Source: Klebsormidium nitens (Eukaryota > Plantae > Klebsormidiophyceae). From it: a stretch of DNA of 64,000 nucleotides. Each line of letters starts with the position of its first letter. Positions within the stretch are counted from its first letter, which is position 1. The notes beneath the pieces are model-generated. The model ran no database searches and was not told the origin of the DNA. It saw nothing but the letters and a program-made list of their open reading frames with translations. Position numbers and translations under genes: made by a program. Below are positions 56,998 to 63,040 of this stretch, piece by piece. The stretch covers positions 2,033 through 66,032 of the forward strand of contig DF237461.1 in assembly GCA_000708835.1 (NCBI GenBank). Direction: 5' to 3'.

Positions 56998-58413
56998 CAG
57001 ATTGTCTATAGTACTGGCGCTCTGGAGCGACACTTCACGAAACTTTTTGAAAGTAAATGGTATAGTCGGACAGGCAAACAATCTTGAAGTGCGACACTGC
57101 AAGACATAGAAGCTAAGTGAGATTGTAAACAAATGTCAACATACACATCTGCAACGTCGCGATTGTTGGGTGGACTTAAGAGATGCAGTTGAACTTCTTG
57201 ACAATTTTCTGCTGCCGACCTTTCAAACTTGCTTTGCACGCCTTGAGGCGGCGCGGCTGGAATAAGAGCTAAGGCCGACAACCGAAACAATCCCGTAAAT
57301 ACGCCGGCTGTATGTCCGACTGAGGGCTGTTTGAAGGACCGAGCATTCTTTAAGGGCAAAGCTAGACGGGCGCGCCGTTGCGGCACATGCTTAGTACCTG
57401 TATTTTCGACGTAAAAAGCAATAAACATTCCACTTATGAATGCTAGAGATTGATGGAATTTTACAGGGGGCATTGCATCAGTAGGTTCAACGCTTCACTA
57501 GTCGATCGCAATATGTGGCACACATGACATGCATGTTACAGCTAGCTGCAACACTGGTCTGCCGATAGGAAGCTAGAGCTGAAGCGCAGAATTCATTTAG
57601 CGCGAGCACACTTGCTAATCAGCGAGCGCTGGCATGAATTTACGTGCATGCAGACTGTAGGTGCTGCAGTCGCGGCATGTATATATTCGAAGGAAACGCT
57701 CCCGCGGCAGGTGACACGGCGGCCATCATTACTAAATGTCCGTGTCATTTTCGGATATCCCAATTCGGTGTCCCGCAATCTCGACTTGAACGGCCACCGG
57801 GCGCGACTAGCTTGAACTTGTCTGCCATCAGTAACAGATCCTTATGGATATGCAATGATTTGCCGCAAAGCATCTTAAGTTTTGCCTAGTGCGCGCCTGC
57901 AAATCCAGCTCGAGGCCTCCTAGAGTACGTCCTCCTCAGTTCGGGCTAATTGTGCTACTCTCCTCACGTGCATGTAAATGCGCAAGCAACTGGATTGTCT
58001 TGTGGACGGTGCAAGTCTCCAAGCGACACACAAAATCTACCCCTACAAGTATGTTTCTAATAGGCCAAAGCCCTTCAGGAACTGACCCGGATTTGACGTG
58101 CTAGCTTCGAGCGCTTTGTGGCGAATGCAATCGACAAACAAGCTACTGTCAAAGCTCGGAGCGGCCGATTCGACAGAAAGTCCTAATTTAGATCTCTAGA
58201 GCTCGTCTGATGACAAGCTACCTGTCCTTAGCGGGCAATGCGACCTATACCACCTGATATCGGTGTTTCAACACGGCATCTATTTTGTTGTCGAGACACC
58301 TGCATGCTGTCGAATCTTGCATGCTGTCGAGTCTGTAATCGTGCACCCGACCCTTCATCATTGCCGCGAAAAACCGCACTCAAGCGGGACCGAAACAACA
58401 CACGCGTGAGCTT

Positions 58414-61400
58414 CTACATGCTGGCCGTAAGAGACTGCGACGCAACCAGCCAGGGGATCGGGTCCTTGCTCATATCTCCCGGCAGCGACCCGGACCCCAG
58501 TCCGCTGCCCGCCCTTCCGCCCGTTGTGACGAAGGAACCGGACCCAGTCGACCCGTCGGACAGCGAGATGCTCCCGTCCCACTCGTTTTTCGCCAGCTGG
58601 AGCCCCACTTGCGCCATGTCGGGCCGTGCCGACGGCCGCCTCTGCGTGCACGCGAGCGCTACGCGGATACACAACATCGCCTCCTGTGCATCGAACTCGC
58701 CCCTAAGTGCCGGGTCGAGGAGCTCTAACTCTCTATCCTGTTTGTACAGCTCCGCGGCGACTTCGGACAGGACCTCGACGGACCCGTCCGGGTGGTGTTG
58801 GACGACCATGCGTCCGCTGACGAGCTCGAGCAACAGAATGCCGAAACTGTACACGTCGCACTTGGGCGTCAGGTACTGGGGCCCCCCGTGCAGGTACTCC
58901 GGGGCCATGTACGGGACGGTACCCTTGACCATGGTCGAGGTGTTGGCGCCCGCGTCGAGGACGAGGTGCGCGAGGCCGAAGTCCGCAATGCACGCCTGAA
59001 GAAAAGGGTACTTTCAATCGATGACAACGTTTATTTCCGGTAAGGGTTTCGACAGGGAAAGGTGGGTTACACATGGGGTCTAGGGTGGCCTGGGGTACGG
59101 TGCATGTCATTTCCTGCTCAGAAGCTAGAGAAGGTTGACGAAGGGTCTCCTCTGCGTCATTCCCATCACTGCCTTGTTACAAGTACAGTGTATGATCGTA
59201 CCTGGAGGCCCCCCTCGCGGTCGATCAGCAGGATGTTGGCGCTCTTGATGTCGCGGTGCAGCATCGGCGGGCGGATGTCATTGTGCAGGTACGCGAGCCC
59301 GCGCGCCACGTCGCGCGCGATGCTCAGGCGCTCCGCCCAACTGAGCGGCGGCGCGTCGGGCTTCACCTTGTGCAGGTTTTCTCCCAAACTCCCGAGAGTA
59401 AAATATTCAAAAACGAGCAAACTCTGCCCCTCCTCGGTACAAACCCCCAGGAGCGGTACCAGGTTCCGGTGCCGCACGTTCCCGAGCGCCTCCACCTCCG
59501 CGCGCCACGCGCGGTCCTCAAAGTCGTGCCGCCCGGGGAGCTTCTCCAGGCGCTTCACGGCGACCGTGGTGCCGTCCGGCAGGAGTGCCACGTGGACCAC
59601 TCCGAAGGAGCCACGCCCGATGACGCTCTCCTCGCTGAAGTCGGCCGTCGCGGCACGCAGTGTGGCGAGCGAGTAGGGCCCCCCCGAGGGTGACAGAGGT
59701 CCGGGCCCCCAGGACTTGTAGGATTGAGCCCCGGAGAACGCGGGAGTGGGGTTCTCCTCGTCAAAGCTCTTGGGGATAGCTTTTAGGCGCCTCTGCCAAA
59801 AGCAGAACAGCAGGAGGGACAGCACGCAAACGGCGACGAGGATGCCCCCCCCAACGCCGCCGACTATGGCGGCGATTTCGGTGCGTGAGGGTGAGTTGGA
59901 GGAAGAGGAGGACGCGGAACTCAGTGCTGCTGGGGGCGGGGGAGCCGGCGGGCCTGAATAAAACAAAGACTTTAGAATCAGGATTCAAGCCTGCTAACCA
60001 CTTTAGTTTTGGAGCCTGAAAAGAAATAGAGCAGCCCCAAAGACGGTTTGGTAGGCTCTCCGGGTTGGTGAAACCGAATTTGGCGAAGGAAAGTCGAGAC
60101 GTGGGGCCAGGAGTGGTTTGCACAGACAGGTACAGAAGGATGTGAAGAGAAGGGACTCTCATAGGCTCCTTAGCGGGGATGACTGCGGATCCAACTAATG
60201 TAGATATTTGTGTCACATGGGAAGCGTATGGAGAATCAGAGAAAAGGGCGAAAACGTGCTAGGGAGAGAGTGAATTTGATTCGTCACTACAGACATACAA
60301 TCGGAAGCAGACCGGTGTTGGTCTTGTGCGCTGTGTCCTGTCCATTTTGTTGCAAAAAAAACTCCGCTCTGTCAAGCACTGGTGTCTGCATTTTTTTGGT
60401 GTCTGCATCACTTAGTGGGGTCAGCAGATTGCAGAAATTAGCAGAGAGAGTAAAAACTGCCAAGGGGTGATCTAAAAATCTGCTCGCTCGAGGGTCAGCT
60501 TTTGGCCTTTCGGAAACTAGGCTACTCAAAACTTAGCGGGTAACAAAGGCTCTGGCTCATGGAAGCCCCTACCCTGGAAACGGCATGGGCAAGACTTTAT
60601 TTTCATGTGTCCTGTACTGTAGAGCTGACAAACTCTTGGGGCCGGCTCGAGCAGTCTGCTTGTGATTCTTACCTGGGCAGGTATTGAAGGAGTTCGGGTT
60701 TGGTGGGTCTGCATTGGAAAAGGAAAGGGCACATCAGCATCGAACGACCTAAGAGCACTTGAAGCAGCCACAAGCCCATACTTAAGCAAGAAGGAAAAGA
60801 ACAAGGCCGCTTGTAAACAGATGGCGTGTTTCTTAGGACAGGCAAAGCACGCTAACAGACGAGATCAACTGTCATTGTTGATCACGAGTTTGTCATTCTG
60901 GATCTCCTGGTCTTTGTTGACCAGAGACTTTGAGAGTACTAAAGTTCCATCTACGATTCAAAAAAGGCCCCAAGTGCACATCCTTTCCGGGCACTGGCCT
61001 GCAGGAATGCTCTCCACAGCAATGCCAAGAGCAGAGTCCATGCAGCACACAAAAGCTTTACTCACAATCTACGTTCAATCTCAGATATTCAAACTGTTCG
61101 TTAGGCAAATCATCTTCAAGCAGCGGCATGGAGGCAACAAAGTCAGCTCACCCGTTCCTTGACAAAACGTTACTGAGTCCAAGCATGGTCCGCCATTCCC
61201 CACTTGACTGTCCGATGCAAATCGGATCGTGGTGTTTTTGCCGAAGGCCACAACCGGCTGGCTCTTGAGCTTGTAATTCATGGAGAGAACTGTGCTGTCA
61301 CTGACGTCAAACTTAAACTGCTGGGATTGAATCACAGTGACGACTCCCGGCACGGAAGTGTCCAGGATTGACATGTTGAGTACTTTGATTGGAGGCCCGT

Positions 61401-62805
61401 TTGAGGGGGATTGGAAGGGGTTGCCAGCCAGTGCGAAACTGAGGGTATACGAGGCTCCCGGAACGGTGGTCACCGATTGCTGCAAATCGATGAAACAGGA
61501 GCGCATTACGCACAGAACAGAGAACTTCAATATAGCTTGAGGAGAAAGGGCAGAAGGAAATCTAAGCAGGCACGGCTGGGAAGAGCAGAGCCCTTACTAG
61601 GCATGACAAACAAGCGACAAATGATAATTCATCGTTCAGCCTGACAAAGTCTTATTCCAGCCCAGGTCCGGAATCAACCAAAAGCTTGTGGGTTGACCCC
61701 AGTAAGGCACCCTGGGTGGCAGGGAACACCTTTGACGTTGAAACCAGGATCTCAATCTGCATACCAGAAAGATGCTGGAAAGAGCTAGCATGACACGCAA
61801 ATATAGCTCACTCTTCTCCCCGTCTTACTGCAGTCAGGTGAGGACTCTTGTGAAAGTTGATCCGCTTCTCAACTATTCGATATGCTGAGAGTGAGAACTC
61901 TTGTATGTAAGGGAATCCTTCTACAAACTGGCCCAGCCTACCCGAAAAAAACGTGGGGTACATATATCTAAATCTGCAGACTGCAGGGCAGCTTGCCTGT
62001 ATTGTCCCCGCGTTCACCCCATTCAGGTCCAGGCTGTGGTTCCCAGTATAGGTGGCCCACCCGTAGAGGGTGTTGACTCCACCGCTCAAGTCTACAGTCC
62101 CCTCCGTGACGGTCCATCCCAAGATGGAAGGGTTCCCCACCCCAACATTGTTGAGCTGGGGGTAGTTGGGTAACTCAAAGTCCCCATTGAAGAGGAGGTC
62201 TGTCATGAAAGAGGGACTTTGGTCTGATTGAGCCGAAGAGAGCTAGTTTATCCATCGCACTTCGGAATGGACCTGTGAAGCTTCCCAAGAATAGTGGCTT
62301 TGCATATCATGAGCCTGCTTTTGGATGTTTATTGTGTATCTTGATGATCAGAGCCACATCGACAGACATTCTCCTAGCAGCGCATGATTTGGTGGTGGCT
62401 TGAAAAAGACAGGAAGGAAGCTGCTCCAAAAACAGCTCTAAAGAGAGTATCCCAGCTTTGAAAAGTTAAGACAAACTTCCGGTCTGGTCATCTGTACTAT
62501 CGACTACAAACTGAGTTCAAACCGCGATTGGCAGAATTTGCGCACACGAAATATGTGCTGAGAATCTGCAGAATTCTACAGCCCTGTTTCTCAAAGCAGA
62601 GCGAGTGAGCGCTTCAGCAGAATCCATGAGGTGATACCAAAGCTGCATAATAATCTGACGGGATGACACGTCTGCTCAAGCAGTGGATGCTAGGATTACT
62701 AAATGTAGATTAGTGACTGCAAATCAGGTTCTCCTCACCTGCTGCCATCACCGATGAGCACCAAACAGACGCAAGAAACGCCAGAGAAAGATAGGCCATC
62801 ATCAT
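58414..62805 (-). CDS. Receptor-like kinase (RLK/Pelle, RD type) with a DUF642/choice-of-anchor-C-like ectodomain, about 655 aa
   Basis: Exons 62805-62739, 62199-61997, 61479-61152, 60708-60673, 59953-59202, 58995-58414; frame-consistent. Signal peptide MMMAYLSLAFLASVWCSSVMA; ectodomain LLFNGDFE...ILGWTV...SLDLNG...GNP...GPPIK...GPCLDSV; Pro/Ser linker; TM IAAIVGGVGGGILVAVCVLSLLLFCFW; kinase motifs GRGSFG, VAVKRL, HRDIKSANIL, DFG, GTVPYMAPEY, DVYSFG. Confidence 0.88.
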
Positions 62806-63040
62806 TTGAATTCGTAAAGTACTGGAGACTGTTTTCTGCTTGAGCAGCTGAAGAGCAGGATAACAACGCAGCCGCCTGGCCACCTTGCCCCGTGAACCAC
62901 TGATTTTTCCAGGGGCGTTAGCAACCGTGCCAGTTGCTCGATTCTACCTACCTAGCTTCGTCCTTTCTGAACCTTCTTTCAAGTTTTGGGGGAAACAAAG
63001 TCGAGTTGGAGATTCTGGTCTCTGAACCGGTTGAGCAAAA

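Follow-up and report, generated by a model that had tools for sequence, protein, structure and literature searches.

A transcribed receptor-like kinase of Klebsormidium nitens with a DUF642/choice-of-anchor-C ectodomain and a candidate role in glycan or cell-wall sensing

The window analysed here is a stretch of 64,000 nucleotides from the alga Klebsormidium nitens (contig DF237461.1 of assembly GCA_000708835.1, positions 2,033 to 66,032 of the forward strand). A minus-strand gene at positions 62805..58414 of the window encodes a receptor-like kinase (RLK) with an ectodomain of the DUF642/choice-of-anchor-C family. The gene has six exons, which upon concatenation give 1968 nt and 655 codons with zero internal stops in the frame check. 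The encoded protein contains, from its N-terminus, a signal peptide, the DUF642 domain, a Pro/Ser-rich stalk, one transmembrane helix followed by the basic residues QRRLK, a juxtamembrane stretch, the kinase, and a Gly/Ser-rich tail. The signal peptide, ectodomain, single transmembrane helix, and cytoplasmic kinase are thus present in one polypeptide with the layout of a type-I RLK. The features of the locus, in the order of transcription, are as follows:

62806..63000, minus strand: 5′ untranslated region, extending at least to 63000, which is the edge of the stretch compared with contigs; spliced contigs cover 62739-63000.
62805, minus strand: start codon ATG.
62739..62805, minus strand: exon 1, start codon and 22-residue signal peptide with the core LSLAFLASVW and the end VMAA; phase-1 GT donor.
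61997..62199, minus strand: exon 2, N-terminal half of the DUF642/choice-of-anchor-C domain with NGDFE, GWTV, and SLDLNG; glycosylation sequon NHS.
61480..61996, minus strand: intron 2, GC-AG, which falls exactly at profile position 69/70 of the domain.
61152..61479, minus strand: exon 3, C-terminal half of the domain with PGASYTLSFALAGNP, GPPIK, and GPCLDSV; sequons NMS and NTT.
60673..60708, minus strand: exon 4, mini-exon of 36 nt that starts the Pro-rich stalk (PPNPNSFNTCP); both of its joints are present in spliced contigs.
59953-59202, minus strand: whole exon 5.
59877..59953, minus strand: first part of exon 5, Pro/Ser-rich stalk PPAPPPP...SSASSSSSNSPS.
59796..59876, minus strand: transmembrane helix in exon 5, a single helix IAAIVGGVGGGILVAVCVLSLLLFCFW followed by the basic stop-transfer sequence QRRLK, read directly from the sequence.
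59202..59636, minus strand: last part of exon 5, kinase from the N-lobe to the catalytic loop, with GRGSFG, VAVK, the αC glutamate, and HRDIKSAN.
58995-58414, minus strand: whole exon 6.
58609..58995, minus strand: first part of exon 6, C-lobe of the kinase with DFG, GTVPYMAPE, DVYSFG, and RPSARPDM.
58414..58608, minus strand: last part of exon 6, Gly/Ser-rich C-terminal tail and stop codon.
58416-58414, minus strand: stop codon TAG.
58300..58413, minus strand: 3′ untranslated region; the 2746-nt contig from run X1 (its position 2347 lies at 58300) continues for about 400 nt past 58300.

The exon structure is evident in assembled contigs, not raw reads, from four public RNA runs (X1, X2, X8, and X12) belonging to four studies, which were compared with the window over positions 58300-63000. 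All five predicted joints have been found in each of the four runs, and single contigs of 2746 nt (X1) and 2755 nt (X12), from different studies, contain the six exons with zero mismatched letters. Four of the introns are of the GT-AG type. Intron 2 is GC-AG, with the donor CAG/GCAAG (the slash marks the exon boundary; CT..GC on the plus strand), and is spliced in all four runs. The depth of contigs that cover introns is 2–10, versus 50–170 for the spliced form in RNA-type runs. These low-depth contigs span parts of every large intron (window positions 59936-62625), with no alternative joints reported, and are most simply unspliced pre-mRNA. The joining of all six exons in spliced contigs rules out that the ectodomain and the kinase belong to separate genes; the signal peptide, ectodomain, stalk, transmembrane helix, and kinase are encoded by one transcribed mRNA. 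The original prediction, made from the letters of the window, had placed the gene at 58414-62805 and described a signal peptide, a beta-rich domain, a Pro/Ser stalk, a transmembrane helix, and an intact kinase of the arginine-aspartate (RD) type. All of these parts can be read in the exon translations of the minus strand; the exon junctions that it gave at 61152, 60708, and 59953 are exact, and the spliced contigs confirm their linkage.

The beta-rich ectodomain of about 177 residues is encoded by exons 2 and 3, the translations of which were scored against profiles one by one, and the bit sums given here are therefore those of two halves added together, not of a scan of the joined domain. Exon 2 matches positions 2-69 of Pfam DUF642 (PF04862) with 23.6 bits (E = 4.8e-5), and exon 3 matches positions 70-155 with 19.3 bits (E = 1e-3), so that the 157-position profile is covered end to end. 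The matches to the NCBIfam choice-of-anchor C model TIGR04362 are stronger, at 37.4 bits for exon 2 (positions 3-66, E = 2.9e-9) and 46.2 bits for exon 3 (positions 67-156, E = 5.6e-12). Because the spans matched by the two exons abut exactly at the splice junction, the exons together encode one complete domain. Each half is below the Pfam DUF642 cut-off of 27 bits, whereas the sum of the separately scored halves is 42.9 bits. The corresponding sum for TIGR04362 is 83.6 bits, which does not reach the curated cut-off of 120 bits, and bacterial single-domain members score 127–149 bits against the same model. By these scores of separate halves, the algal ectodomain appears to belong to the DUF642 family at the Pfam level; the NCBI rule does not count it as a TIGR04362 member, and it is an outlier that has diverged from this bacterial subfamily. 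The window contains no second DUF642-like stretch.

An alignment with 42 bacterial relatives leads to the same family. The Klebsormidium exon pieces retain 41 of the 46 columns that are conserved in at least 70% of these relatives, including 14 of the 14 near-invariant ones. Where the family has MGW the algal domain reads MNY; it further departs from the family by three substitutions elsewhere and by about 10 inserted residues. The insertion is located around SILDTSVPGVVTVIQ (window positions 61330-61375, minus strand; residues ~37-52 of exon 3), between two strands; it is missing in nearly all of the aligned bacterial relatives, and P0007 alone carries a comparably long insert at this site. 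Judged from the sequence, the match of profiles and motifs is far beyond chance. The identification of the protein as an RLK with a DUF642/choice-of-anchor-C ectodomain, which was the central claim of the original prediction, thus holds: both profiles that it proposed for checking are matched in abutting halves by exons 2 and 3, and the family columns, the RNA contigs, and a second copy of the gene described below agree with it. The ectodomain motifs that it listed are present (in the forms NGDFE, ILGWTV, SLDLNG, Q..PGASYTLSFALAGNP, GPPIK, and GPCLDSV), except that the spacer before PG has five residues and not four.

Relatives of the ectodomain are few. When the exon-3 half was compared exhaustively by phmmer with 1.84 billion representatives, just 76 proteins reached E ≤ 0.001; for part of them, the source name or the Pfam domains were checked. 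The only close match is P0001, with 95% identity; all of the others are 31–49% identical over the exon-3 half. The checked relatives are bacterial or metagenomic choice-of-anchor-C proteins, many of them with multiple domains or with PEP-CTERM, and two proteins from amoebozoan transcriptomes. There is no plant protein among the checked matches of this search, and none of these checked relatives, bacterial, metagenomic, or amoebozoan, contains a kinase. Bacterial proteins alone were retrieved by a word search whose profile combined two-domain bacterial relatives with the exon pieces, each in a row of its own. When the profile had a 615-residue first row, the list was swamped by relatives of that row, with no kinase-bearing match among the best 120. 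A word search with residues 12-120 of P0001 returned P0001 alone, and therefore the window protein and further paralogue fragments are not in the searched collection. No relative was detected in a metagenome scan with exon 3, and no significant match in a sequence search of the Protein Data Bank with each ectodomain exon.

The two amoebozoan proteins, P0006 from Pellita catalonica (1010 residues) and P0009 from Gocevia fonbrunei (1414 residues), are from EukProt, and phmmer matched four stretches in each of them. Family scans of P0006 identify four DUF642/choice-of-anchor-C repeats, and the two proteins form their own well-supported clade in a half-domain tree. They could be genuine eukaryotic members of the family or sequences of bacterial prey or contaminants. 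Some bacterial proteins join DUF642 to other modules: P0112 to TIR_2, and P0210 and P0211 to beta-propeller repeat families. Therefore, DUF642 occurs in varied multi-domain proteins in bacteria too.

The fold of the family was approached through a bacterial homologue, P0049:24-192 (about 40% identity), which was modelled by AlphaFold2 (AF2) with both Klebsormidium exon pieces among the alignment rows. The model has a predicted local distance difference test score of 93.8. Foldseek matches it to the carbohydrate-binding modules (CBMs) CBM70, CBM16, CBM4-2, and CBM35 and to CBM-like Stig cyclases, with template modelling (TM) scores of 0.5–0.67. In the ESM Atlas, the model matches bacterial DUF642 clusters with TM scores of 0.84–0.90 and a seed-plant DUF642 cluster with a TM score of 0.82. 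A feature search of the ESM Atlas with exon 3 gave scores all below 0.9, to generic CBM and GBD-like families only. According to the model, the DUF642/choice-of-anchor-C fold is a CBM-like beta-sandwich, and by homology the algal ectodomain is predicted to be one as well.

The protein P0001 is encoded on Logan contig L001 from run SRR23617307, which has the same layout as the window gene: ectodomain open reading frames followed by two kinase open reading frames, in a gene of about 4205 letters. The ectodomain exons of the two copies are 93–95% identical in amino acids. At the nucleotide level the exons are 85–90% identical, and the introns are largely unalignable. The splice sites are conserved, including the GC donor of intron 2 (L001 ~1424-1949), as are mini-exon 4 and the three N-glycosylation sequons of the ectodomain; exon 5 is collinear and its motifs are intact. 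For exons 2 and 3, the ratio of non-synonymous to synonymous differences (pN/pS) between the copies is 0.08, compared with 0.18 for exon 6, which points to purifying selection on the ectodomain at least as strong as that on the kinase. The second copy may be an orthologue from another Klebsormidium or a paralogue. Base composition changes in steps along the gene. The GC content of exons 1–4 is 0.51–0.57 (0.55–0.77 at third codon positions, GC3) and that of exons 5–6 is 0.66–0.67 (GC3 0.82–0.85); all introns have a GC content of 0.45–0.49, and L001 has the same pattern. The step could reflect a mosaic origin of the gene or merely different constraints on its parts.

The Pro/Ser stalk, about 40 residues long, begins in exon 4 and is positioned directly below the DUF642 domain. 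The kinase motifs are intact: GRGSFG, VAVK, the αC glutamate, HRDIKSAN, DFG, APE, and the arginine of subdomain XI. The part of the kinase encoded by exon 5 scores 84 bits against Pfam PK_Tyr_Ser-Thr and 79.7 bits against Pkinase, and that encoded by exon 6 scores 52.5 bits against Pkinase (profile positions 139-256). The nearest solved relatives of exon 5 are BRI1 (E = 4.7e-35), BAK1, FERONIA, SYMRK, and CERK1, followed by IRAK1/4, which places the kinase in the RLK/Pelle (IRAK) family. From its motifs, the RD kinase is probably catalytically competent.

The gene is best read as an expressed and selectively maintained type-I receptor kinase of Klebsormidium with a glycan- or wall-binding DUF642 head, a reading to which we assign a probability of roughly 0.7. 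Plant DUF642 proteins have been reported to interact with wall polysaccharides and with pectin methylesterases (PMEs) (PMC13516882, PMC6651502). Because of this published behaviour and of the CBM-like fold of the bacterial homologue, it is reasonable to infer that the DUF642 receptor senses glycans or the cell wall. The CBM-like head would be held out into the cell wall by the stalk, which is probably O-glycosylated, and would bind a polysaccharide or glycoconjugate of the alga’s own wall or of microbes. Ligand-driven clustering, a change in oligomeric state, or the recruitment of a co-receptor would then activate the RD kinase, which would be switched on through phosphorylation of its activation loop, as in other plant RLKs. 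In such a receptor, the C-terminal PEP-CTERM or similar sorting anchor of the bacterial proteins would have been replaced by a eukaryotic transmembrane helix and a kinase.

Several points weigh against this reading. The structural model is that of a bacterial homologue with about 40% identity to the algal protein, and among the Foldseek matches the same fold occurs in non-glycan roles, in Stig cyclases and in domain III of Cry toxins. We know of no choice-of-anchor-C domain with a known ligand. A shift in specificity is possible too, since the algal domain is divergent (about 84 bits for the halves scored apart, versus the cut-off of 120) and its stem in the tree is long. The activity of the kinase is read from its motifs. 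A non-glycan ligand is an alternative because Stig cyclases use the same fold.

How the domain came to be in an algal receptor is a separate matter. It is possible, and is suggested tentatively, that, in the lineage of Klebsormidium, the domain was captured horizontally from a bacterium and joined to an RLK already present there, independently of the DUF642 wall proteins of seed plants and of the DUF642-kinases annotated in ferns and Taxus. The nearest neighbours of the domain other than P0001 are, where checked among the 76 at E ≤ 0.001, bacterial or metagenomic or amoebozoan, with no plant among them; scores against the bacterial model TIGR04362 are about double those against Pfam DUF642; and neither the word searches nor the metagenome scan gave a eukaryotic relative. 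In both copies of the gene, GC3 is lower in the ectodomain exons (0.62–0.76) than in the kinase exons (0.82–0.84). However, in a half-domain maximum-likelihood tree, which was computed from sequences other than plant DUF642 proteins, the Klebsormidium pair has a long stem in a polytomy, apart from the amoebozoan sequences and with no supported sister, bacterial or otherwise. The polytomy means that the tree says nothing on origin, and its sampling means that it does not bear on nesting among plants versus bacteria; moreover, the taxonomy was checked for only part of the 76 matches. The domain also has a spliceosomal GC-AG intron, and the composition of its introns is host-like, and any transfer must therefore be old. 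The fuller proposal, in which a streptophyte alga that lives on land and diverged early acquired a bacterial choice-of-anchor-C surface module and set it before an RLK kinase, giving a receptor class independent of the seed-plant wall proteins, is rather doubtful.

It is somewhat unlikely that, instead of recognising a soluble glycan, the ectodomain anchors the receptor to a polymer of the wall, by a covalent or otherwise tight bond, and signals mechanical strain as a sensor of wall integrity, in the manner of proline-rich extensin-like receptor kinases (PERKs) or wall-associated kinases (WAKs), or that it binds a PME. The extensin-like Pro/Ser stalk immediately below the domain would suit a tether, Pro-rich and extensin types have been reported among the RLKs of K. 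flaccidum (PMC10868138), and physical interaction of plant DUF642 proteins with PMEs has been reported (PMC13516882). Nevertheless, none of the data presented here separates tethering from ligand binding. The searches place the Klebsormidium domain closer to its bacterial relatives than to recognisably plant proteins, and because of that the biochemistry of plant DUF642 proteins may not transfer to it.

An ancient origin within streptophytes is unlikely. According to this explanation, an RLK with a DUF642 ectodomain was present early in the streptophytes, the DUF642-kinases of ferns and gymnosperms and perhaps the secreted two-domain proteins of seed plants descend from it, and the Klebsormidium copy is highly diverged. 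DUF642-kinase proteins do occur in ferns and Taxus chinensis (PMC12512272), and the fold of plant DUF642 proteins resembles the family model with a TM score of 0.82. By contrast, the exon-3 half reached no plant protein at E ≤ 0.001 among those checked, DUF642 wall proteins have been described as confined to spermatophytes (PMC6651502), and no member from a bryophyte, a lycophyte, or another alga was seen.

The change in GC and GC3 between exons 1–4 and exons 5–6 might suggest an artefact, such as a pseudogene, bacterial contamination, or the misjoining of a kinase gene to a neighbouring gene for a secreted DUF642 protein; this is very improbable, and the three variants are rejected, because the six exons occur in single spliced contigs from independent studies, the domain is interrupted by spliceosomal introns and has no stops, and pN/pS is 0.08–0.18 relative to a second copy with identical layout.

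Among the streptophytes with canonical receptor kinases, Klebsormidium diverged earliest. DUF642 proteins have been stated to be exclusive to spermatophytes (PMC6651502; PMC13516882), and a review from 2024 gives the ectodomains of Klebsormidium RLKs as only leucine-rich repeat (LRR), Pro-rich, extensin, and C-lectin (PMC10868138). The gene described here contradicts both statements. The ectodomain had been predicted to be outside the standard RLK classes, and indeed DUF642 is missing from the list in the 2024 review (PMC10868138). The architecture is not entirely absent from catalogues, as DUF642-kinases of ferns and Taxus chinensis are already in InterPro; both are mentioned in a single sentence of a fern study from 2025, in which DUF642 is among the domains of unclassified fern RLKs and receptor-like proteins (PMC12512272). 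No paper that links DUF642 to Klebsormidium or algal RLKs was found in literature searches. The combination of DUF642 with a kinase is thus catalogued but unstudied, and the Klebsormidium gene is not the first of its sort. The claim is a modest one, since novelty of RLK ectodomains is common and fern and Taxus DUF642-kinases have been annotated. Still, in an alga that branches at the base of the lineage of land plants, the gene provides a tangible candidate sensor of glycans or of the cell wall, one that is both expressed and conserved, and with it a tractable route to the ligand of the uncharacterised choice-of-anchor-C/DUF642 domain. It is also a test case for the entry of bacterial domains into the plant receptor repertoire by gene transfer. 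If the domain was captured from a bacterium, the gene would be one case in which sensing domains gained by horizontal transfer fed the first diversification of plant receptor kinases.

The algal ectodomain can be compared with four known systems. It shares with the bacterial choice-of-anchor C proteins (TIGR04362; PF04862) one domain of about 157 residues that is covered end to end, a family fold predicted to be CBM-like, and the near-invariant elements NGxFE, GW, S.DL.G, Q, PG..Y, F.LAGNP, K, M, A, F.S, and GP.LD.V. Unlike these proteins, the algal domain is eukaryotic, contains a spliceosomal intron and about 10 inserted residues, and reads MNY at the MGW position; it is followed by a stalk, a transmembrane helix, and a kinase where the bacterial proteins carry PEP-CTERM or another sorting signal. 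The wall DUF642 proteins of seed plants (BIIDXI and TEEBE of Arabidopsis, DFOT1 of rice) belong to the same Pfam family, have the same predicted fold, and, like the algal ectodomain, reach the wall space by secretion; for both it is plausible that they act in the wall or bind glycans. However, they consist of two tandem domains with no transmembrane helix and no kinase, whereas the algal protein has a single domain in an RLK.

The DUF642-kinases of ferns and Taxus chinensis (A0AA38CBH3) have the same combination of domains as the algal gene, as compared by Pfam and InterPro annotation only. They differ in that they are listed as unclassified RLKs, without function or phylogeny (PMC12512272), and could be either orthologous to the algal gene or products of an independent fusion. 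The CrRLK1L/malectin receptors (FERONIA), LysM receptors (CERK1), lectin RLKs, WAKs, and PERKs share with the algal protein the type-I layout, an ectodomain of a glycan-binding type, and an RD kinase of the RLK/Pelle family. FERONIA, CERK1, and SYMRK are among the nearest solved relatives of the algal kinase, and its Pro-rich stalk recalls those of PERKs. By contrast, the DUF642/CBM4-like fold family predicted for the algal ectodomain is outside the classes of these carbohydrate-sensing receptors.

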